A DNA stretch of 64,000 nucleotides from Schmidtea polychroa (GCA_044892525.1 CM097888.1:37324001-37388000); one strand, 5' to 3'. Counted from the stretch's first letter, positions 1-15,400 are shown. Made by a program: numbers and translations. Notes: generated by a model from the sequence alone, not told the origin.

Positions 1-840
1 CAATAATAATTTATCCACCCGTGTTCCTCAAACAAATATTAAAATAATTATTTAAATAAACAAAAAATTTTAATTAGGGTTGTAAGTTAAATCATGTTTG
101 ATTATTTCATTGACTTTAGAGCCATAAATACAGGCAATCTTATGGAATCATGTATAAATTCCATATGAATTGCTTGTCTTGTCTAAACTTTTTATGGAAT
201 ACATCAGCCACTGTCTAGATTTCAATTGTGAATTATGTAGACTGAAATAAATTGTTTTATAAAAAATTCAAAAATTAAATTTAAATTAGTGATTAATTTA
301 CAAATTTAACATCGAATTTTTGTCTAAAATTAATAATATTAAATTGGAAATTTTAAGAGTCTTCTATTTTATAAGTTTTTTTGTTAAAATATTGGTTTTT
401 ATAATATAATTGAATTGTTTTATCGTTTGAATATTTAAAATAATTTGAAATTGTAAATTTAATCATTATCAATAATAATAATAATAATTGAAAGAGTAGA
501 ATGCACGTTTCAGTTAAAACGGAAAATTGCTAATAAAAATTTAAATTGTATTTATCAAATTACATAAATTTTTATATAAACATTTAAATTAATAAATTAA
601 AGTAAACTTAAAATATATATTATTACTTAATTAATAAATTAAACCAGCATTGAAATCAACATCAAAATTAAAAGAAGAAAAGCCTCGAAGATATTTGTTT
701 TAATATGAAGGGAAAAGCTAGGTTTGTGAAGATATAATAAATTTTAGTTAAGTGATTTTATTGCAGTGATTTTATTAAGTGATTTTATTATTGGATACCG
801 AAAATGAATTTGATGTCGTTGCTGCTAATAATAAGAATAA

Positions 841-1265
841 GAATAAAATAAACAGTACAAGCTTTGTGATACCAAGTGCAAATCCCAATAGTAGACTAGT
901 TTTGAGCTTTTGGCTCTCATCAGTACTATGCAGGAGACGCGAAGATTTCTCTTCGCGCCAGGTAAGTATACAATATTGCTGATTCAACTCTATTGCATAC
1001 TTTCCCCGGTACACTGGAAATCACATCGTTTGCAAATTAGCTTGGTCACAGAAAAAATCTGTAAACTTGTAAACATGGCGTATGAAAAATCATAATCACC
1101 TCTGCGGACTAAAAAATTAGTCGATACACAGATACTGTTTACAAGTGCATCCGATTACCTATAGAATTTTTAACTTATAAAGTAATGGTGTATCACAAAG
1201 CTTGTACTGTTTATTTTATTCAAGTGAGACATCCGAAAAAAAATTTTACACCATTACTTTATAAG
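841..1265. repeat. Interlocked inverted repeats around the hammerhead
   Basis: Perfect 32-bp inverted repeat 841-872 / 1190-1221 and perfect 19-bp inverted repeat 1174-1192 / 1247-1265; ataagaataagaataa at both 831-846 and 1261-1276. Confidence 0.8.
888..929 (-). ncRNA. Minimal type I hammerhead ribozyme motif with one core substitution (G12A)
   Basis: Minus strand ATAGTA-CTGATGA-GAGC(CAAAA)GCTC-AAAA-C(TA)G-TC-TACTAT: 6-bp stem I, CUGAUGA core, 4-bp stem II, AAAA in place of GAAA, palindromic mini stem III and a GUC triplet. Confidence 0.72.
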
Positions 1266-1373
1266 AATAAGAATAATAATTTATAATTCAATGATGTGTA
1301 TTTTAATTTGTAAAATTTCTTCATAATGTGTAATTTTTTCTGAAAAGATTTTTTTAAAATATCAAATTTATAG

Positions 1374-4300
1374 GTCGCTATGTATATAGCTGCACATTTT
1401 GGACATGTCGATTTGGCGTTAACTATGTGTAAAAGAGGGATCACGCCAGGTGAACCGGTTGGTTTGCATCCGTTGCGTCAATGGTGTCCAAATAACCAAC
1501 ACGTTGATAATTTAAAAGCTCCAATTCACGAAGCAGTTGAATGCGGACAGTTGGGAGTCCTTCGAAGTTTTGTACACCAAAATATTACAAGCATTCTTTG
1601 TAAGGATGGCCATGGACTTCAACCACTTAATATTGCATTAAGAAAGAAAATAAAAACTTGTGCCTCTTTTCTTCTTAGTAAACAATGGAGTCGCATTCCA
1701 TTTAATGGTAGCACAATCACATTGTCAATATTCAATAAATTAAAGAAATGGACGGAAAGAGCGAAAGAAAAAACAAGTCTGAGCTTAAATTCAGATAAAC
1801 CTACTGCAAAACCAAGACATTTTCAATCATTCCCATTAGTTGGACAAGGGATTTATATTGATGGATATTCAGCTGATCAAATTAGTAGTAGATCTAAATT
1901 TCCGCCGAAAAAAACCATCAAATCAACTAATATCGAAGCATACTATCGAAATCTCTATGGGATTTCTCCTGAACAATATTTTGAAATTCCTGTTATCAAA
2001 ATTGCTACAAATCGAAATTTTAACCGATCTGGACATAAAAGAGTCAAAAGACTTTCTTCTTCAATAATAGACAAAACTGATTTACAAATAGATACTTCAG
2101 ATGTAGCTACCAAAGATAAACCGTTCAAATTTCCAAAAATTCATTCTGGATTAAGTAAATATATTTATATTCAAAATTCTATTCATATCTAGTTAATACA
2201 TTTCATTTTCTCGTAAATAAATTTTTGTATGAAATTTTGGAAATTTAAAAATTTTTTATTATTTTTTAAAAATCTATAAAAATTTTAAACATTATTTTTG
2301 TCAGGCACGTACGCAGGATGAATCCATGGGGGGCTTCTATATATTATTTTTATATATATTTATATAGAGGGGGGTTATTTATATACAGGGCCGCCGAGAG
2401 GACTTTTGGGGCCCGGGGATATACTTCTTGTGGGGGCCCCTGCCAAGAGCGTGACAAAAAAATTTTCCCCTCGGACTTTGGGCTATTTATAAATGAAGCG
2501 GGAAACCGAAAAATGTCCTAATTGTTATTGGAACAATGTATTCATCAAAAATTCTCTTACAAAAATGAAAACGTTTACAACTAAAATTACAAAAAAAGTA
2601 CAAAAAACAAATTAATTTTTAGAATATTGCTTTCAGAACCTTGCGCCTAGCAAACAAATTAATTACGTCTTGAAAATCAATTTTCTTAGCCATTTCAGAT
2701 TCAATCGACAACATTCCTAAATCATTCAATCGGTGTTGTGACATTGTGGATCTCAAAACATCTTTTATCCTTTTTAAAACACTAAAGGATCGTTCTGCTT
2801 CAGCAAAGGTTACAGGGATCGTACAAAATAATCTTATTGCTATTATTATGTTGGGAAACAATACATCCAGTTTCATTTTTTTAATGATGTTTAGTAACTC
2901 AATGGGCGAGAGAGATTTGTTTTGTATATTGGCATCATAAATTGATTTTAAATGGAGTATTTCTTCACCAAGATTATGGTCAATATTATTTTCATATACC
3001 TTTTGTAATTTTTCGGACTTCTTTTGTATTTCTTCATCATTAAGGTTATGAAATAACCATAATACATTAAATAACGAATCAATTTCTTTAGCCGCATTAA
3101 ATCTTCTTGTAATATTTCCAATAATACAATCTAAGAAAACATTGAAAACATTTGTTCTGAATTCGTCACTTGGTGTCATTTCTAATTCATCCACGTCGCG
3201 AATATCGGAGTCGATGGCGGTCTCCCATTGACTGCTAATTACTAATAATCGAAAATTAGACTTCAGCACTCCCACACCGGTAAAGAAATGCTTTGTAGCC
3301 CAACGCTTAGGTTAATTTCTTATTCACTTTCGGCTTAGTTCACAAACACGATTACTTTATCCGCTTCTTCCTGGAGATTTTCACATTGATCAAACAACTA
3401 CACTTACTACACTATTAATGTTTGTAATTTTTCTTTTAGTTAAATAATAATAGAGTTTGTAAATAATGAAACAGGCTCAAAATGTCAAAAACTAGTGATA
3501 GCAAGCACTTGACTCTTGACAAACAAAATATTGCCACATGTGCTTACCATTACTGCAAGATGCGTTTGTGCCGTGTAGACTTTTTCGCAACGGGGGTTCC
3601 GAAAGCAATCTTGGCAACGGACACTCTCCAGACGTACCCCACACACGCACTACAAAAGGAGGAACATAGTTCCTAAAAATTGAAATCATGATTTTTTCAT
3701 AAAAAAATAAGTGATTTAAATCATGATAGATTTTTTCTCCAGAGCCCCGGGTATTTTCCCCATCAACCACCCCCCCCCCCCTCCCCCTCTTGTCGGGCCT
3801 GTATATATATATATATATCGGCATTCGGAATATTTCTTAAATTGTTTTCAGTTTATATATTTATTAATTATAGTTTTTTATACTGTTGTTGGAATCATGG
3901 GGGGGTTAAACCCCAGTAAACCCCCCCTCTGCGTACGCCACTGATTTTTGTTGTTATATTTATTAAATAATTAAATAAATGTTATCAAGATTTATTAATT
4001 TATTTAACCAATTGCACATAATTTCATCTTTTAGCAAAATTTTAATATAGTGAGAATGATTTTCAACAACAATTATTAATAATAAACAGTTAAAACTAAC
4101 AAATGTCTTTCTTCGTTTTCTCAAAATGAAATTGCACTTACAGTTTTCTAGCTTTGCAAAAAATTATCTCTTATACAGCAGATAGGTTTTATCGCTTGTT
4201 TACACATCGTTTTATTATAGGAATTACATGTGCCGTGCTTGCATGTTTTAGTAATTTTTTTACTCTATTTTGAAAACTATAATAAATTGGTAAATGTAAC

Positions 4301-6065
4301 TTCTAATGAATTTTTTATAATATAATTTATTTATTATTTATAGGAATTTTTTTATCAATTGCAACGCGACGTATACATACGCAATAGTTGCATTCATACT
4401 TGACCATTAATTACAGTTACATATGCTTATAACTTATCTTTCTAAATTTGACGCTATAATATCTCAAAAACATTATTTTCAAGAAAACATAGAGAGAATC
4501 GGTATATGTTATTCTTTATGTTTTTATATTTTCATCCTTTACACTAAAAAAATCAATTAATTAAATGAAAGCACAAATTTATTGATTTGTATCATTGAAT
4601 AAATAGCACTTGATAAATAAATCGCTGAAATTTGTGGTACATAGGAAAATTAATTATTGATTTATAAATACATTGAAAATAAATGAAATACCAAAGTAAA
4701 TTGACCAAAGTTGTCAAAAAATTGTTTACCAAACCATACCGGGTTATCTTGAGTCAATTTAATACTGGCAAAATTAGACTGAAAAAGTAATTTTTGCTAA
4801 TGAGTCCAGAGAAAAATAACATTCCTTTATATATTTTTGTTGGGTTATTGTTTAGCAAGTCGGTTAGTTTCTGACTACTCGTGTCCTTTTCCACTCAAAT
4901 AAGTAATACACAACACTTAACAATTTTATTCAAACTTTACCTCAATTACAATTAGTCACTTGTTTTTATACTTTTCTTTCGCTGATAATTGTTATCGTAA
5001 AATAGGTTGCCAAAGGATAATCAACTTTTCATGTACGATAATTTATAATTCTCTCTGGCTTTACTTGAATCATTCTCTTTCTTTAGGTCTCCTTGATTTT
5101 CGTGAACGCCTTCTGATATTGATTTCTTGGACCAACTGGCGCCTCGTCTGTTTTTGAGTTCTCTTTTTATACTCTTTTTGAGAGGCCAATTATCTAAACA
5201 ATTTGAGGTTATTGAAAATAATTATTATTCATGAAACTTAGGATAAATATTTTAAGGGTTATGCCAACAGTTTAGTTTGTTTACCCCAAATTGTCACTCG
5301 GGAGAATTTGCTTCCCTATCTAATCGGTCGGGTCTCAATTAGCTCGTAGTTTTCTTTAGCCGTCGTGTTTCTCAAGGTTTCGGTCGTTCCATTACCGATT
5401 CATTAACTTTTATTAATTTGTTTTCACGTTATAACTTTCCCTGTGAGCTCCTTATCAAATTTTCATTGTTTCTGAATTTGTCTTTCAGTTTGGTGTTCAA
5501 CCATATCCATTTCCCAGATCAATATTGTTTCAAATTTTATAAATTTTTAATTAATTTTTGCACTTTTGATATTTTTATTGTTTTTGTGTGTTTAAATATT
5601 TTATTTTGTCCATTTCTAAATTACCCCAAAATTTTTAAAAAAATATTTTAATTTCCAGATGATATGAGATCTCGAACATCAAGTATACAAAGTTATGAAA
5701 CTTTTCAAGAAAGTCAGCGAAAAGTTTCTTTGAAGGCAAAGGAAAAGAAAAAAGTCCATAATTCAAATGAACAAAATTTAAAGTTTAACAAAAATAAAGG
5801 CGATACTGGACTACCTCTACCTCTGAAAAGTATAGATTGCACTCCTAGGCCATATTACTATGTCAGGTCGAATCAAACTGATGAAATTTCCACATCTATC
5901 GAAACTTATTATAAAGATAGGGGATATTTGCCCAGAGAATATGCGATAAAATGTTTGACTTTGAGTAATCATTTGAAAGATAAATCTTGGTTATCTCAAG
6001 TTCGAATTGCTATGAATCTAGGAAAGGAAAGTGTAAAGAAAAGTATCAAATTAAAATATGTTTGA
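1374..6065 (+). CDS. ANKUB1: ANKUB1 3' part: ankyrin exon 1374-2154 and terminal exon 5659-6065
   Basis: VAMYIAAHFGHVDL...EPVGLHPLRQWC...KAPIHEAVECGQL...LLSKQWS resembles human ANKUB1 VALYIAAFCGYIEL...EAVGVHPYRAWC...KCPIHAAAEAGQL...LLSKMWS. The last exon AIKCLTLSNHLKDKSWLSQVRIA resembles AIYCLAVASAFKEKRWLQQLEIA. Splice sites tttatag|1374, 2154|gtaaat and ttccag|5659 keep phase 1 between the two exons; stop TGA at 6063-6065. Confidence 0.88.
2302..3943. mobile_element. hAT MITE, outer element of a nested pair
   Basis: Ends caggcacgtacgcag ... ctgcgtacgccactg; perfect 8-bp TSD atttttgt at 2294-2301 and 3944-3951. Confidence 0.85.
2386..3801 (-). mobile_element. Internally deleted hAT element with a C-terminal transposase fragment (ORF 2619-3275)
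   Basis: Imperfect TIRs cagggccgccgagag / ctcttgtcgggcctg; 7/8 TSD tttatata / tatatata; ORF carries the hAT dimerisation motif FCTIPVTFAEAERSFSVLKRIKDVLRSTMSQHRLNDLGMLSIE. Confidence 0.85.
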
Positions 6066-6889
6066 ATTCTCATTCAATAATATGATACCTTTCATGAATA
6101 CATGGATATTTCATTTTTAAATTCAAATTTTCAATTTACTATAAAGTTTTTTATCAACTACCATGTTTTAATATTTCATGACATTTAAAAACTTTCTTTT
6201 TTAAAAATTGCTGAAATTTAAAATGAATCAGTCTTTAAAAAATTAAATAATTTAGAAATATATTTCTATACATTTCAAATAACCCGCACTTTTAAATATG
6301 AACTAGCGTCAAAACCAAAGGCGAATCCCAAAGAGTCTTCTTAGATCCCCTCATTTTCAATATTATTAGTATGCTCAAGGTAAATTTAGATCGACACCTG
6401 GACAGGCCAGGCCAGAAGTCGATCCATGTCATAGGAAATATTTATTTATTTAAATGATCTGTAAATGTGTGATTCAATTTTCTTTTATTATAGCTGTAAA
6501 TTACGGTAATTATTATATTTTTGGATAGTAAGATAAATTTCAAATCATAAATTAAAGTTGGAACAAACCCTTACTTGTCAAATTAGTAAGAACTCAGAAA
6601 TATTGCACAACGTAAAAGTTTACAAGTTTTACAATTCTTATTTTGATAAGATTGTTAAAATTAAAATTTGAATTTTTTCTCTCAGCAGCTAGATATTTTT
6701 TTGCCAATTTTTCAATGGTAAATAAGTGACTGACTATCTCTACAAAATTTCTAATGACATGGTCATCATTTTTAATATTTAATCATTGCTGAAAAGAAAA
6801 TCAAAATGTTCAAAAACTAGGAATTCGTTTTCTAACAAGTTTAGAGCAAAAATTTTAAATTTTATTAAATATGATTAACAGTTAACCAA

Positions 6890-6990
6890 AAACAATGAGA
6901 AATATATCTGTAGCCTCTGACATTTGATCCACAAATAATTGAATTTAGTTATTTCTGTAACTTTATCTCCAAAAGATATGATAAATCTAA
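6890..6990 (-). pseudogene. Possible LINE reverse-transcriptase C-terminal scrap
   Basis: FGDKVTEITKFNYLW resembles the RT motif-7 pattern (V..FKYLG); a short match only. Confidence 0.3.
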
Positions 6991-7019
6991 AATCTTTCCT
7001 TCACAATAATTTTGTCATA

Positions 7020-7290
7020 GATTGTCATAAGTTAATATCGAATTAAGTTAGTACTGGTTATTTTTTATGCAATATTTATGTTAGTTTAGTGCAATACTTC
7101 TTGTTTTTGTTATTATTTTACTTTATTTATGAGTTTCTTTTTTTGATGTCATGTTATTCTTTAATCGTGTTTGTTTGATGTTTTTATATGTTTTTAATCT
7201 TACAGGACTTAGAACTATATTTGCGTGCTGTTCAGCGAATTCCGATCAGAAATCACGTTTATTTGAGTATAAAATCAGTTTTTACCTAAT
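7020..7290. repeat. Partial copy of the 11.6-12.2 kb repeat, same orientation
   Basis: Perfect 33-mer 7253-7285 = 12127-12159, with patchy similarity back to ~7020 / 11903. Confidence 0.8.
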
Positions 7291-7359
7291 ATGCACATGG
7301 TTTTCAAGCATAACCAGAAAATAACTATTAACCATATAAAATTTCATATATAATAATTA

Positions 7360-7731
7360 TTATTGGAAAATTATTTTAAGAATAATTTTATATAATAAAT
7401 CTTGAAATTTCATCTTTTCCAAAACTGGAATAGTGTTTGAATTGTAGCCAATTTTGAAATACAAAATTGGATCCATTTCATCTTTCATGTAAGCTTTCAA
7501 AGTAGATCCAGGAGTAATGCTCAAATCAGACAGTATCCAATGATCGGGTAATTCTGCTCCAAAACAATTCAAAACCAGAACTTTACTCATTTGATTTTCA
7601 CTACCTAAGTGACTGGTGTTTTGTGGAATAGACATTTTCTTGATTATTAATTCTTTGATTTTTCTAACTGTTTCTCCAAATGGTATGTCCATCGAAACCC
7701 GATCATTTTCATATGTAATAAAGACACGCAT
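7360..7731 (-). CDS. ANKUB1: ANKUB1-like N-terminal ubiquitin-like coding segment, opposite strand to the rest of the gene
   Basis: MRVFITYE...GETVRKIKELI...LVLNCFGAELPDHWILSDLSITPGSTLKAYMKDEMDPILY...TIPVLE resembles human ANKUB1 N-terminus MRIFIAFE...DETVEVVKLMI...[40 protein letters not shown]...TMPVME. The frame is open with no stops; the start coordinate is approximate. Confidence 0.8.
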   Translation of the reverse strand: MRVFITYENDRVSMDIPFGETVRKIKELIIKKMSIPQNTSHLGSENQMSKVLVLNCFGAELPDHWILSDLSITPGSTLKAYMKDEMDPILYFKIGYNSNTIPVLEKMKFQDLLYKIILKIIFQ

Positions 7732-8104
7732 GAATTTCTCTATGGTTTTAAACAGATTAAAAATGTAGTTTAGTACAAATTTTAAAAATGTTTCTTTATA
7801 TTTATATGACATATTGCAGTGATGCATATCATCTTTCAGGATTACCAAATGTATCATTATTCATTTGACTGTCTCGGCGAGTAGTTTCAATTATCTTTTC
7901 ACATTTTTAGTCCGTCAAGCGAATTTTGATTAATGATTTTGAAATTTTACATTAGAAAATTTTTGTACTTGTTTCAAAAATAATGAAAAATAGTGTTTAA
8001 ATTAACTGTCTTGTAATTAAAATTTCAATTTGTAAATGATTTTTTGAGGTTCCAGATAAATCATAAATTGTGTCTTCATATAATTTATTTTTATATTATA
8101 ATGA

Positions 8105-8375
8105 CAAAAGAAAATAGAAATTAGAAATTGAAAGATTTTATCAAAAATATCATACGGAATAAATTGGAAATTAAAGTTATAATAAACTAATAAAAAAACG
8201 CTAGAATATTCTATGAAATGACGAAATCCAACAATGAAATCATCAAAATCTAACAAGAAAAAAACTCAAAAAATTAAAAGAAATAATAATCATATATAAA
8301 AACTATTAAAAATAGTACAGAATATTCTAGAAAATGGCCATAGCCAATATGGTGCTGAATTTAATTAAAAATAAA
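8105..8375. repeat. Partial copy of the 11.6-12.2 kb repeat, inverted
   Basis: 19-mer ctagaatattctatgaaat at 8201-8219 is the reverse complement of 11777-11795; further blocks match 11620-11890. Confidence 0.75.
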
Positions 8376-9430
8376 AAAATTACCAATAAAAAATTTCTTT
8401 TAAATAAAATCAAAATTCAAATTGAATAAAAATAATTCGAATCTTTTTAATGCTTCAGTGCACACACACATACAAGCACACAAAATTCAGGGTATATAAG
8501 CAGACACATTTCGATCATAATTAATCTGATTTGGTTAAACAAAATTTCATGAGTTATGCAACTGAAATTTTCTTATTGAAACCTTTTTGAAAAATAAAAT
8601 GTTTTACCATAGTGTTTGATTTTAGTGTTTTACTAAAACGAGATAATTTTTTATATGTAAAAATCATCACAAGCACGACAATATTTTTAGGTACAACCAC
8701 CTACATTATCTACAAGTTAGTAACATGATTTGTACTATGATTTACTAAGAATGAAGTAGTTTACAATGTAACTCCTTGTGCGAACTGTGGACGATGGCAA
8801 GTGATGCGAGGAATGCTCTAACGCTTCTTTGTCTCCACGTGGGAAACCTCTGCATCTCCGTACCATGCTCTCGAAAGGTAAGACGAGTAACTGCTTAACC
8901 TTTAAGGCTAGGATTTAAATTAGGTAGGAAGATAGTGAAACCCAAAATGACATTGTGACATTTTATCAGTTTAGTTGGATGGATGAATACAGTTTAATCT
9001 ATCTAATTTAACTCGTTGTTGAAGTCTTAGTTGTGGATAATTTTATTATATTTTGATGGTAACATTACTATTACAGATGTCAGGTAAATTCCATAATCGA
9101 ATTTTTTCTCATTTTGTTATATATTTTGAATATTTGAGGAAAATATAAATTTTTGAATTTAAATTTGATGTTTTTAAAAAAATTGTAAAAAGTTCTGATA
9201 ATAAAATTAAATGAAATTATTAATGATTTTAAATGCAAATAATTATGAGTTTTAATATTCATATTTTCGATGTGTAAATTTTTAAATGGATTAAAAGTTG
9301 TAAAGTATACCACAATTAAATCAATTCTAAGATATAATAGTTATCTTAAAAGTAACAAGAATCTTTATTGGCTCCCAATATCAAAATTTTCCGAAAGTAT
9401 AAATTTAAAATATTGCAATTATTTATTAAG

Positions 9431-12400
9431 TAGATGTCGATTTTAGACAGTACGAAATATTTAGTAACCAAGAAGATTATAAAATATTAAATTTTGAAAC
9501 TGGCGTGGGATATCTTGTTACTGCTGTAGAAATAAAAAAAGAAATATATATTTTTAAGCATTTATTTAATGATGTATGAATTTTTATTTGAAATACAAAG
9601 ATACCATAATCTTTAGTCAATTGAAGATAAACCAATTTCTAATAAGCTTACGAATTTTGCTCTGAAAAGTGTTCATAACTTATCTTGTGGACGCGATCAT
9701 TCGTTGGTATATGTCTCAATTAAAGATTTTAATTCATCAAGTCTTATATCCATGGGCAATAACACATTTGGACAATGCAGCAGCACAGATAATGTGCTAA
9801 ACTTACATGACAATATTGTGACATTTCCACTTGCCATTTCTCAGGTACTTCAATAATATGGAAACATCTGGAAAGATATTAATTTTAAATTAGTTTATTT
9901 CTCATTTATTTATTTTTAAATTCTATTTTATAACTTTAATTATAATTTTGTATCAATGAAAAATTTTAGAAATTCACTATCATAAAGGTAAAGATTTTAG
10001 ACAATCTGGTTAATAAGTTGATTTAAAGACATTTAAAGTCGAAATATGTATGCCAGATTTTATTAGTAGATGGTTATGTCTCGTCGAGATCTCCCTCCCC
10101 TATGACGCATTTTAATTAGTATTTTTATATAGGTCACGTTACCACGGAAAACNNNNNNNNNNNNNNNNNNNNNNNNNNNNNNNNNNNNNNNNNNNNNNNN
10201 NNNNNNNNNNNNNNNNNNNNNNNNNNNNNNNNNNNNNNNNNNNNNNNNNNNNNNNNNNNNNNNNNNNNNNNNNNNNNNNNNNNNNNNNNNNNNNNNNNNN
10301 NNNNNNNNNNNNNNNNNNNNNNNNNNNNNNNNNNNNNNNNNNNNNNNNNNNNNNNNNNNNNNNNNNNNNNNNNNNNNNNNNNTTCGAGGAGTGCAAATGC
10401 CCAGGGCCCGGGTTTGATTTGTCATGTATTTAAATTTAATTTTACTGACACTTAAGTTGACTTACCTACAATCCATCAGAATAAATTGAACGAATATCAA
10501 CAAGTAGTTAGATCAACATCGGTATCAATATTGAGTGTTCAACGCGAACTGTTATGAAACAAGAAAGACTGAATGGACTTGCAACTATTGCAATGGAATA
10601 TGATTGTCAAAATCATTGAACTTCGATAATATTATAAACGATTTTGCATCAGCTAAATCCAGAAAAAAATGTTTTTTGACTAGCCTAAATTTGAAAATTA
10701 AAGTTTGAATAAAACCCTCAGTTCATTGAATTATATCAATTTTTATTGTTTTTTACATTGAATTTCTCGCAAAATCATTTTTCACTCCCATTCATGCGAT
10801 CACCTGGCTTCCGAACACCTACTAATATTGTTGCGTCCTCCTAGGGCCTTGTGATCGTGAGCGTCTCCGGGGGCTTCTGCTTGAAACCACTGGACGTATC
10901 ACCTCAGCCTTCCATTCATCATCTCCTCGATATTGGGGATCAGTCCAGCCCGAATATCCCGTTCTATGTTGGCCAACCACGCGTGGTTCACACGGGTTTC
11001 CTCTTGAGCATCACCATATTCCTTGATGAGTTTTTTGGAGTGCGGCTTCGGCGACGTGAATCCGTGGATTCGAACCGGTTATCACGGTTACACCAGTCTT
11101 CCTTTACTCTCCTGGTTTCGCGCAGTGATTCGTCTTGACATGAATTTGTAGCCGTCTCTTTTACAACATGATTATGCAATGTTTTTATCTTATTTCACTT
11201 CATTACCTTTATCAACATGAATCACACATACGCACAAACTAACCAATACATTTTAATGATTTATTATTTTTATTCCTTCAAATTTATTTTAGATAAATAA
11301 AATAATATTACAGACTTAGTTTGAAAAACACTCTTCACGAAATTCTATAAGGTATCGCTTCTTGGCTTTAATACTTACAAATCTTAATTTGAAAACAACG
11401 ATTTATTATTTATCGTTTAACCTATAAATTGCAAGTAAGGATCCGGTTCAAGGTTGATGTCAGGATAAATAATCTACTTTATTTCTAATTAGTACTTTGA
11501 AAGAAATTAATAGATTCCATCGTATAATTTAATATCACCAATTTATATTGTGATTCCAATTTTATCAATTTTGCTGACGACTTTTTATTCATCATTTATT
11601 TGTTTTTCTAATTTTTTTTTAATTTTAATTAAATTCGCCGCATGATGGATATTGCCATAGTTTTATTATATAATTCTCATTTCTTTTAATTTTTGAGTTA
11701 TCTTGTTATTTTTTGATTATTTAATTTTCTAAATTTATTTTTTGTAATTAGTTTCGGTACCATGCTTAATCTCGTAATTTCATAGAATATTCTAGAGTTT
11801 TTATCATTTTTATTATAATTTTAATTCTTAATCGATTCCCTTATGCTATTTTTGATAAAATCTTTCTATTTCTAGTTTCTATTTTCTTATTCTATATTCT
11901 TTTATTGCCATAAATTTCAATTTGTCTACCTTCTGTTATTTATTTGTGTTATCTATGTTTCTTTCGTTCTATAATTCTTGCCTTTGTTATTATTTTACTT
12001 TATTTTTGTTTTCATTTTGATGTTATGTTTTCTCTTTTATCGTGTTTATTTGGTGTTTTACTTGCTTTTGAATTTTGCTCAACTTCTGACTATAATTCGC
12101 GTTGTTTAGCAAATTCCGATGAAAATTCACGTTTATTTGAGTATAAAATCAGTTTTTACTCAATAATATATATAAAAACCAGCCATTGCCACCACTGATG
12201 TAGCAAGGTTTCTGTGGGCTTTTATGACGAGCTTTAGCGTTGGATTCCTTGAGTTTTAGAGTCTTAATGGAGTCCCCCGGAAACGTTGGTTGTCTAATCA
12301 AAATAAAGATTATTATCAAACAATTAACGTCATCTTTTGGGTTCCAGGGTCCTTGTGCATTACATAATACACTGTTAAGCTACTGATCACCACGAAAAAT

Positions 12401-15400
12401 ACAAAAAGATCGCATAAGTTGACCCAATACATTAACAAAACGAAATTTCAAGAACATTTTACAAGAATCAACTTTGGGAACCTTTCCCATCAAAAAGTAC
12501 AACCGTTCCATCAACTTTAAACTTGCAAAGAATAAGAATTCCTTTCTCATTCAATACCTTCCTAATTTGTATTTCATTTTTACGAAAGTTAATTTTCTGA
12601 ATTTAGATTCAATGTGGATTGGATCATTCATTAGTTTTAACGAGTAATGGAAAAATATATTCTTGTGGTCTTGGTACAGATGGACAAACAGGATTGGAAA
12701 CTTTTGAAAATGTCAACCAATTTACCGAAATTTCTTTCGGAGATCCTTCAATAAAAATAAAGTATGGCAAATTATGAACGGGTTTAAAATACATACTTAT
12801 AATATTTGAAAATATCACTTAATACACTTAAAATTATTTATTTTTCAAGAGTTTCATTTTAAGGCGTATTATATTTACGTTTTTAAATTTGAATAAAAGT
12901 TTTTGCTGAAACTTAGATTAAAATTGAAACCATTTATTGCTTCGAAAGTTGGAATTTTGGCCATATTTCAATATTAATGAAGAAACATTTCTGTAAATAT
13001 AAGTAAGGTAATAAAGATTTCCAGAAACTTATTCCATCAATTTTATACATAAATATGAATTTATAATTATAAACAGTTCCTCATTTATTTCAAGGAAATT
13101 ATGCTCATCATCCGTCTGCCATCATAATCTATATTAACTGTTAAATAACCGAAAAAATAATGATGTAATAATTACAGGGTTTCCAAAAAAGTTTCATCCT
13201 TTTCCAGAAAAGTTTCATCCTTTTCCAGAAAAGTTTCATCCTTTTCCAAAAAAGTTTCATCCTTTTTTAAAAACGTTTCATCGACAAATATTAAAATAAA
13301 TTAAAAAGGAAGTACACGATTAAGGTAATTATTTAAAAATCTTCATCAGCAAAAGCTTTCCCAATAAACGAAAGCATGTTAGAAAAGTAGCCTTCGCAAT
13401 CCTCTTCCGTAATTAAACTGCTGGCTGATCGAATCGCATCCAAAAGCTGTTCTTTGGTATCACAGTTTGCATCTTTGATCAGACCTTTCCACTTCGAGAA
13501 TAAATTCTCAATTGGATTTAGTTGCGGGCTATAAGGCGGCAAGAATAATACACTATGCCCTTCGCTATTGATCAATTCTCTTATGGCTATAATTTTGTGG
13601 AAAGGAACATTATCCATCACAAAACACCGGTTCGTAATTCCTTCAGATCTCAACTTGTATGATTTAATGAGTTAATTGCATAATCTCAATAAATTCGTTG
13701 CTGATTGAATGTTAATTGTATCAGATTGTGATTTAATCACCAATGCCTCACATAAAATTCTTTTCCACGTATTATTAAAGCTTTTATATAAAATTTTAAA
13801 AGATTTTAAGTCAATTGCTCCTTTACACATTTTAATATGCTATATGACTCACGCATTTCAATCGACCATGTTTATGAACCCGTATGCGGGGATAATAGGA
13901 GGTCTACCCCGGCCTACCAAAAGTCTCTAGTCAGCCAGTTATTTACATATTGCAGTTTATAATGAACAGTAATGGGAACAAATGTCACAAACACACGAAT
14001 ACTGAATGTTCGTAGTGCTGAGAGAGGCGCACTCGTTTAGGCATTGTATCTACCACCTTTGCCAGGAAATCAGGGGAGATGTGTGACCATTCCTTATGCA
14101 GATGCGTTTCCAGTTCGGAGGTGTTTACGGGCAATATGAATCCCTTTGCGAACTCGTCTACCAAGGATGTCCCACAGAAACTATAGGATTCAGATCAGGG
14201 CTTTGTGGAACCCAACCCAAAACGTTAATGCTGTGCTACAGAAAGAATTGCATCATGATGTGCCAACTATGAATTGGTGCATTACCTTGTTGGAAAATGA
14301 TTCCCTGAATTTCTTGGAGAAAGGGAACAAGCTCATTTTCCAGAATATCACGGAGTTCCAGTGACGTCATGTGATTGCTGTACTTCACTAGAGGGCCAGT
14401 TCCACGAGCTGAGAAAAGACTCCAAAACATGATGGAGCCTCCTCCATATTTCACATTTGGCTGAATGCAGGTAGGGTGAAATCGTTCTCCTATGTGACGC
14501 CAGTAGAATTGCTGTCCATCAGATTTTAAAATAGTCCAACTCCTCTCCCGGCACCACTCCAAGCGACGTCGACGAATTGTTTCTGTAATCAAATGCTTCC
14601 TTGCGCAGTATTTGCCATAGAAACCATGAAAATGTAATGCGCGACGAATGGTGGATATGCTGACATGCGCAGGGACAGCGTTAAATGTGGACACTAACTG
14701 GGACAGGGAATACCAACGATGAGCCACCACAAGTCATTTCAGCTGCCGTTGTGTACGGATGCTCAGAAGTTTAGGGCGGCCCGAACGTTGCTCGTTGACA
14801 TATGTCTGCTCTTGGCGGTACTTCCTAAATAAGTAGTTAATAGTTCCTTTGGGATGGCCAGTCAATGCAGCAGTTTCACTGACTTTTTCCATAAGGATAA
14901 CATTCGTAAATAATGCCTTTCTGAAAGTTTGTAAGCTCTCTCCAAGTAGCCATATTCTAAGAAAATGACAATCCTTCATTAACATGACTCACTGTTATCA
15001 CTGTTGTGTGTCTGCAGTGTGAGTAGTCATATTTTGTGTGTACATGTGCGTATGCAGCATGTTGAAGGTGTTGGTGACCTTTGTTCCCATTGCTGTTCAT
15101 ATTTGCACTGCAGACGTTCATTATAACTTTTGGTAGGTCGGAGTATGTGGCATTACACCCATTACATGAAAACTTATACACTAGATCAAACAATAAATCT
15201 ATTAGGATTTGAGATTTATTTCTAAACATATTTAATGATTTTATATATATTGGAATTGCCTATTGATTTCATGACCAAAAATTTAAAATTTTAAAAACCT
15301 TCTGAAAATGGTATAACTAAAACGTAAGATTTTATTGGCTCATCATCATTAAATATCCACTGTTTCGGGCGCTATCAAAAGGCGATCAAAGGTTTCTTTC

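Follow-up and report, generated by a model that had tools for sequence, protein, structure and literature searches.

An intact ANKUB1-like gene and an inverted partial duplicate of one of its internal exons in Schmidtea polychroa

Introduction

A locus of Schmidtea polychroa raises the question of whether one gene can be divided between the two strands of a chromosome. In a stretch of 64,000 nucleotides (G000:C4:37324001-37388000, hereafter the window), the ankyrin and terminal exons of an ANKUB1-like gene lie on the plus strand, while a matching N-terminus with a ubiquitin-like domain (Ubl) is found downstream of them on the minus strand. A preliminary description of this DNA proposed that the gene is split across strands, and listed an inversion of the left-hand block, a repeat-mediated mis-assembly, an inverted partial duplicate of the first exon (giving a stand-alone Ubl microprotein or an antisense RNA) and discontinuous trans-splicing as explanations. 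The follow-up reported here extended to the DNA left of the window, to homologous proteins and to public sequence contigs. The ANKUB1-like gene is intact, has five coding exons and lies wholly on the plus strand; the minus-strand segment is in all likelihood (a probability of about 0.9) a recent, inverted and dead duplicate of an internal exon piece of this gene.

Materials and methods

Coordinates are those of the window throughout, and the genome position on G000:C4 equals 37324000 plus the window coordinate. Negative coordinates denote DNA to the left of the window's first base, of which 30 kb was taken in. The whole genome was searched in six frames with the 102-residue Ubl peptide of the minus strand, and a separate genome search was made for the ankyrin exon. 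Homologs were collected by an exhaustive phmmer search with the ankyrin exon as query. Contigs of four public runs from four studies (X1, X5, X7 and X9) were placed on positions 4800-10000. X7 and X9, which come from different studies, are only guessed to be RNA; both are small runs, used in the form of assembled contigs. In the X1 and X5 contigs, near-identical paralogs collapse and one variant is kept, hence depth and a missing variant carry no information there. Low-stringency matches of about 60% in AT-rich DNA were taken as noise. A slash marks splice boundaries.

The ANKUB1-like gene on the plus strand

The window's first base falls in intron 3 of the ANKUB1-like gene, and only the last two of its exons are inside (Table 1). 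Both of these, at 1374-2154 and 5659-6065, are open in frame, as the preliminary description had stated. The whole-genome six-frame search located a plus-strand twin of the minus-strand peptide, 97% identical, at C4:37317378-37317683 (window -6622..-6317). This twin lies 7.7 kb upstream of the ankyrin exon and on the same strand, and the real Ubl1 exon to which it belongs sits 6.3-6.6 kb left of the window's first base. The exon runs 31 nt past the point at which the window copy ends and then reaches a CAA/GTAATC donor. The exon for the second ubiquitin-like domain (Ubl2), correctly predicted to lie outside the window, was found at -797..-539. Thus, the upstream search that had been recommended for a second exon 1 and an exon 2 recovered both, on the plus strand. 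The ankyrin exon is single copy in the genome. Joined in frame through GT/AG sites, the four exons without the leader encode 604 amino acids, and this product aligns from its first Met to its C-terminus with full-length homologs of 600-700 amino acids.

A further, short coding exon was recognised from the X7 contig, which opens with 24 nt unlike the DNA that precedes the Ubl1 ATG. Its first 21 nt have one genomic match, on the plus strand at -11569..-11549, directly 5' of a GTAAGA donor and 4.9 kb upstream of the real Ubl1 exon. The ATG of this leader exon is in frame, reads MSVDNEIYDPICYLSNGK and joins the acceptor ccttag/AGAAAATTCATG. With the leader contributing 21 residues (MSVDNEIYDPICYLSNGKRKF), the five exons give an intact product of 625 amino acids. 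P0151, a protein of another source with 89% identity, has the leader extension (MSVDNELCDPICYLSNGKRKLMRVF...) too.

The membership of the gene in the ANKUB1 family is supported along its whole length. The ankyrin exon retrieved 258 homologs at E<=0.001, 50 of them at E<=1e-30, and the match begins at about residue 194-233 of homologs of 600-700 amino acids. A protein with the NCBI name 'protein ANKUB1-like' (P0011) was matched at E = 3.1e-50, and the best named full-length homolog (P0003) comes from the flatworm Macrostomum lignano. Pfam matches are weak or lacking: Ubl1 matches the ubiquitin model at E = 3.4e-4, below the curated cutoff, the Ubl2 exon has zero Pfam matches and Ank_2 scores 20 bits on the ankyrin exon against a cutoff of 27.3. 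Ubl1 and Ubl2 nonetheless align column by column with the N-terminal 190 residues of the full-length homologs. The gene therefore has the two N-terminal ubiquitin-like domains, the ankyrin block after them and the full-length collinearity looked for in a family member.

Table 1. Coordinates of the ANKUB1-like gene, its inverted copy and adjoining features
Feature	Position	Strand	Basis or remark
Coding leader exon	-11602..-11549 (G000:C4:37312398-37312451; locus L012:1468-1521)	+	5' end of the X7 contig; GTAAGA donor
Coding exon 2, Ubl1	-6631..-6255	+	Source of the copy; donor CAA/GTAATC at -6255/-6254
Coding exon 3, Ubl2	-797..-539	+	Acceptor ttttag/, donor /GTTATT; phases fit neighbouring exons
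Coding exon 4, ankyrin repeats and linker	1374..2154	+	Acceptor tttatag/GTC; donor TTAA/GTAAAT; phase 1
Coding exon 5, terminal	5659..6065 (stop 6063-6065)	+	Open reading frame; X7 record 17 and X9 record 23 enter exactly at 5659
Low-copy segment (247 bp)	6774..7020	+	Only genomic relative -8647..-8418, in intron 1; 80%, same orientation
Dispersed repeat R1	7031..7291	+	Abuts the copy's inner end; dozens of genomic copies at 71-81%
Inverted partial duplicate of the ANKUB1-like gene	7292..8094	-	Source -6985..-6112 (G000:C4:37317015-37317888, +)
Copied part of intron 2 (about 100 nt; parent -6214..-6112)	7292..7393	-	97/100 identical
Junction of the 70-nt deletion relative to the parent	7394..7395	-	Side-by-side sequences
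Copied 5' part of coding exon 2, Ubl1 (~345 nt)	7395..7739	-	Internal Met at 7731
Copied tail of intron 1 (~355 nt, with the acceptor)	7740..8094	-	Alignment; acceptor from the X7 spliced leader
Cut piece of dispersed repeat R3	8022-8094		Outermost part of the copy
Dispersed repeat R2	8102..8550 (end approximate)	+	Starts within ~8 nt of the copy's outer end; dozens of genomic copies
RCC1-repeat neighbour (RCC1L of the preliminary description), first RNA-supported exons	9268..9844	+	X7 records 21 and 22

Anatomy of the minus-strand copy

The Ubl N-terminus of the minus strand is stop-free from 7731 down to 7395, as first described, and it belongs to an inverted partial duplicate of the ANKUB1-like gene. 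The source piece measures 874 bp and is internal to the gene, while the duplicate is about 0.8 kb long and about 2% diverged. In a self-blastn comparison, 8094..7395 matched -6985..-6286 over 701 bp with 98.1% identity; the inner part, 7393..7294, matched -6214..-6115 with 97% identity. The duplicate was not extended beyond 7292, since a gapped alignment that carried it to 7259 proved spurious. According to the genome search, the parent and the window copy are the only near-full-length copies, other matches being short and weaker. The copy was inserted 1.2 kb past the ANKUB1 stop codon, without the leader exon and the promoter.

Since intron sequence flanks the exon on both sides, the segment was copied at the DNA level. 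At its 5' side the acceptor is retained (parent ccttag/AGAAAATTC, copy ccatag/AGAAATTC). At the other side, a deletion of 70 nt, situated between two ATTTATC direct repeats (microhomology), has taken the final 31 nt of exon 2 and, with the GT donor, 39 nt of intron 2, and this is the reason why no splice donor follows 7395. The preliminary description had observed that similarity ends near 7395 with no usable donor beyond, and this point proves to be the exact breakpoint of the deletion. It had also placed the segment head-to-head with RCC1L, as a native promoter would be. The segment does point towards the RCC1-repeat gene with its head, but the promoter does not hold: as the spliced leader exon sits 4.9 kb upstream of the parental exon, the 355 nt 5' of the copied ATG are the tail of intron 1.

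Apart from the deletion, copy and parent differ by 17 aligned substitutions (some near the inner edge are doubtful) and by single-base indels; letters specific to the copy stand, among others, at 7405, 7585, 7601, 7637 and 7743. Four of the differences are coding, at codons 32, 44, 49 and 109, and all four are nonsynonymous. With P0151 as outgroup, N44S, R49S and L109F are derived in the copy and K32R is derived in the parent. The open frame on the minus strand (7363-7857) comprises 165 amino acids, 123 of them from the Met at 7731 to 7363. Exact look-ups of the 165- and 123-residue frames in public assemblies returned no record, which says little, and a homolog search with the 123-residue frame returned one protein, the parent-like P0151. 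Taken together with the lost donor and the missing leader and promoter, amino-acid changes without visible constraint suggest that the copy is non-functional, a dead gene fragment.

Origin of the mRNA

Two long ANKUB1 contigs, X7 record 17 (1700 nt) and X9 record 23 (1736 nt), reveal which of the two copies enters the mRNA. Each maps to 7395-7737 on the minus strand with four other letters, and to exon 5 on the plus strand, which gives the appearance of a joint between opposite strands. In both contigs, exactly 1071 nt lie between the equivalent of 7395 and the start of exon 5, and the five-exon model predicts the same number (31 nt of exon tail, 259 nt of Ubl2 and 781 nt of ankyrin exon). The minus-strand copy cannot be the source of this mRNA because it is without the 31 nt. 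Furthermore, both contigs read parent-type letters at 7585 and 7601. The apparent joint is thus ANKUB1 mRNA placed on a stretch that holds a paralogous copy, and with the cis Ubl1 exon upstream, the five-exon plus-strand model and mRNA contigs that match it, the proposal of a gene split across strands falls away.

The same evidence bears on the idea of a discontinuous gene whose minus-strand exon is trans-spliced to the plus-strand exons. Spliced-leader trans-splicing is known from flatworms, and for this gene the idea draws on nothing other than the geometry inside the window. A cis exon is present upstream, however, the copy is without a donor, and the mRNA holds the 31 nt, Ubl2 and the leader, all supplied by the plus-strand locus only, together with the parental letters. 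The probability of trans-splicing at this locus is accordingly next to nil.

Whatever RNA maps to 7395-7737 is part of the parent-type mRNA contig. Depth in the X7 and X9 contigs is zero over 6366-7235 and 7758-8279, with traces (3-10) nearer exon 5 and the edge of the copy. No RNA of the copy's own was seen in the contigs of these two runs guessed to be RNA, in which rare variants are dropped. A minus-strand transcript of the copy would yield either a stand-alone Ubl protein of 123 amino acids or an RNA antisense to the 3' region of ANKUB1. Such a use is unlikely, even though Ubl1 lies entirely within the frame that opens with the Met at 7731 and closes at 7363, the acceptor AG is kept and the copy faces away from the neighbouring gene on the plus strand, the first RNA-supported exon of that gene being about 1.2 kb distant. 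Zero RNA depth on both flanks, parental letters alone at the two diagnostic sites in both RNA runs, upstream DNA copied from an intron instead of a promoter, and coding changes that are all nonsynonymous (three of them derived in the copy) speak against it; moreover, no such protein is on record and the sole relative found is parent-like. Of the duplicate proposed in the preliminary description, the structure is therefore confirmed, while the microprotein or antisense RNA lacks promoter, leader, donor and an RNA contig of its own. The same description had named an untranscribed duplicate of a normal upstream exon 1 as the finding that would speak against a split gene, and this is what the segment appears to be, its silence being read from the contigs of the two runs.

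Direction of copying and the flanking repeats

The dispersed repeat R3 gives the direction of copying. In the parent it extends without a break over roughly -7360 to -6900, passing the duplication boundary (-6985), whereas at the window copy the alignments of R3 copies end exactly at 8094. A repeat that is intact upstream and truncated in the window identifies the upstream site as the source and the window segment as derived.

Together, the parent exon and the copy are the 98%-identical arms, 0.8 kb each, of an inverted repeat that encloses 13.4 kb with exons 3-5. This geometry, a segment followed by a middle part and the inverted segment, is the one left by the staggered-break inversion model reported from Drosophila (Ranz et al. 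2007; PMC1885836), where inverted copies of a short unique segment likewise flank the block, here of about 14 kb. Read as such a footprint, the locus would have had its gene body once reversed and head-to-head with the RCC1-repeat gene. The leader exon, however, is on the plus strand outside the repeat-bounded block, and it is already joined to the Ubl exon in P0151, whose 89% identity marks a much deeper divergence than the 98% of the duplicate; the gene must accordingly have kept its old orientation. In addition, either ancestral order would split the leader from exons 3-5 or break the gene, and R3 is whole upstream and cut at the copy. Unlike in the staggered-break case, the block is thus not inverted relative to the ancestral state, and an inversion footprint is highly improbable. 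The inversion of the left-hand block suggested earlier is likewise contradicted by the normal plus-strand copy of the exon upstream and by the leader exon, which shares that strand and is external to the block.

The copy is bracketed by two dispersed repeats, R1 and R2. The boundaries of R1 were drawn from five other loci, and at all five of the other loci examined R1 and R2 stand start-to-start in opposite orientation. Here they have the same orientation, with the copied fragment in between. Both have hundreds of candidate copies and normally make up one composite element, of which a canonical copy is present some 4 kb to the right, at 11560-12166. The duplicate may have arisen by a rearrangement of the repair or template-switch type inside these repeats. 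A two-step model would fit the junctions, in which a direct insertion beside an intact element would have been followed by a local inversion of 1.06 kb (7031-8094).

A second link between the two regions is provided by the low-copy segment at 6774-7020, whose relative in intron 1 (G000:C4:37315354-37315583) was identified after all 18 candidates had been scored. Judging by this similarity, the segment may be the trace of an older local duplication or exchange between the same two regions. The adjacent 6539-6773 is 71-88% related to units of about 100-150 bp that are tandemly arrayed on other chromosomes (for example, C2:5653799-5671531 and C1:108504486-108505969).

Support for the assembled arrangement

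No run of N occurs from -30000 to 10152, which bears out the earlier observation that no gap separates the plus and minus parts. X1 probably derives from the strain that was assembled; its contigs agree with 7406-7877 at every position, copy-specific letters included (0 differences in X1 record 6). X5 record 16 belongs to a different study and a diverged strain, and it runs from the final 48 nt of the copy into 1.9 kb of right flank that is unique; over 8047-10000 the X5 contig shows 54 differences in 1.95 kb and 8 gaps.

Inverted repeats of 0.8 kb and 98% identity can mislead assemblers, and the assembler might have created the inverted copy or turned round the 14-kb block that separates the two copies. 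No listed short-read contig crosses 7280-7405, and at 8008 X1 reads T where the assembly has G. An artefact is very unlikely all the same, as the copy has substitutions, indels and a 70-nt deletion of its own and junctions bounded by repeats, and the nearest 30 kb on its left and 2 kb on its right are free of N. The copy-specific letters recur in X1, the right junction is bridged by the contig of a second study, and the assembled orientation yields a gene whose mRNA length equals that of the RNA contigs exactly. The repeat-mediated mis-assembly envisaged before is also at odds with a plus-strand model that agrees with its homologs from end to end.

Gene conversion or strain mosaics were considered from the contig depths (X1, 7406-7877, about 2x and copy-type only; X5, 7395-8076, about 2x and parent-type only) and were rejected, these patterns being those of collapsed paralogs. 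At 7551, X5, X7 and X9 carry G where both assembled copies have A.

Neighbouring features

The RCC1-repeat gene to the right has GT..AG introns at 9397-9446 and 9574-9616, with RCC1 Pfam matches further downstream. The second of these introns, in the 5' part of the gene, is 43 nt long, and the RNA contig extends for 101 nt on its shorter side. Remnants of two kinds of transposon were also seen. In the intron between the ankyrin and terminal exons, 2619-3275 on the minus strand holds a frame of 218 amino acids that matches the hAT transposase C-terminal dimerisation domain (PF05699, E = 3.6e-10); it is what remains of a hAT transposon and runs antisense to the ANKUB1-like gene. Between exons of the RCC1-repeat gene, 13333-14730 on the minus strand contains frames with DDE_3 (E = 4.5e-17) and a Tc3-type transposase helix-turn-helix (E = 1.7e-9), remnants of the Tc1/mariner type. 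The composition is that of AT-rich eukaryotic sequence (22-38% GC), and an Rfam scan of 1-10100 at gathering thresholds returned zero families.

Discussion

The apparent division of the ANKUB1-like gene between strands results from a window-edge effect combined with a partial duplicate, and neither unusual splicing nor mis-assembly is needed to explain it. Several points weigh against a dead duplicate. At the left junction, no listed DNA contig spans 7280-7405 and the assembly is the sole support, while at the right junction X1 bridges by 30 nt, one below the 31-nt criterion. The acceptor of the copy is intact and an open frame of 123 codons still spans the whole Ubl1 domain, and the count of four nonsynonymous changes out of four is too small to differ significantly from neutrality or from constraint. 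The silence of the copy is read from the contigs of two small runs guessed to be RNA, and it may yet be transcribed at a low level or in certain tissues. In addition, the placement of the fragment between R1 and R2 in non-canonical orientation and the 80% match of 6774-7020 to intron 1 are left unaccounted for.

Among known systems, the copy is most readily compared with dead-on-arrival duplicates or pseudo-exons, with which it shares an internal exon with both intron pieces, the lack of promoter, first exon and donor, and the absence of a transcript of its own in the contigs seen. It differs from them in being inverted, in lying 1.2 kb past its own parent and in forming an inverted repeat around the rest of the gene. 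The Drosophila genes mod(mdg4) and lola have exons on both strands that are joined by trans-splicing. The window likewise shows homologous exons of one gene on opposite strands; here, however, a cis exon exists, the mRNA is the product of cis-splicing of five plus-strand exons and the minus-strand piece is without a donor. Transposable elements are also known to capture gene fragments (transduplication of the Pack-MULE or Helitron type), and the fragment is indeed bracketed within a few nucleotides by R1 and R2. In contrast to such captures, there is one copy besides the parent, R1 and R2 are non-canonically arranged, and no terminal repeats, target-site duplication or transposase were identified.

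The arms of the inverted repeat could in principle recombine, giving a recurrent and reversible knock-out allele of ANKUB1 that may segregate among strains, or could be read through into a long hairpin RNA that feeds RNA interference against the gene. Either is improbable, and neither a flipped allele nor a hairpin or RNA interference state was seen in the data used here. If recombination of the arms did occur, it would flip the gene body away from its leader and promoter, and the gene would then indeed look split across strands.

For annotation, the ANKUB1-like gene should be given five coding exons including the short leader, and the minus-strand frame at 7363-7857 should not be called a gene. 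The copy itself is an ordinary by-product of DNA rearrangement and apparently silent; the inverted repeat that it forms with its parent poses a minor structural risk to the locus and might serve as a marker when strains are compared.

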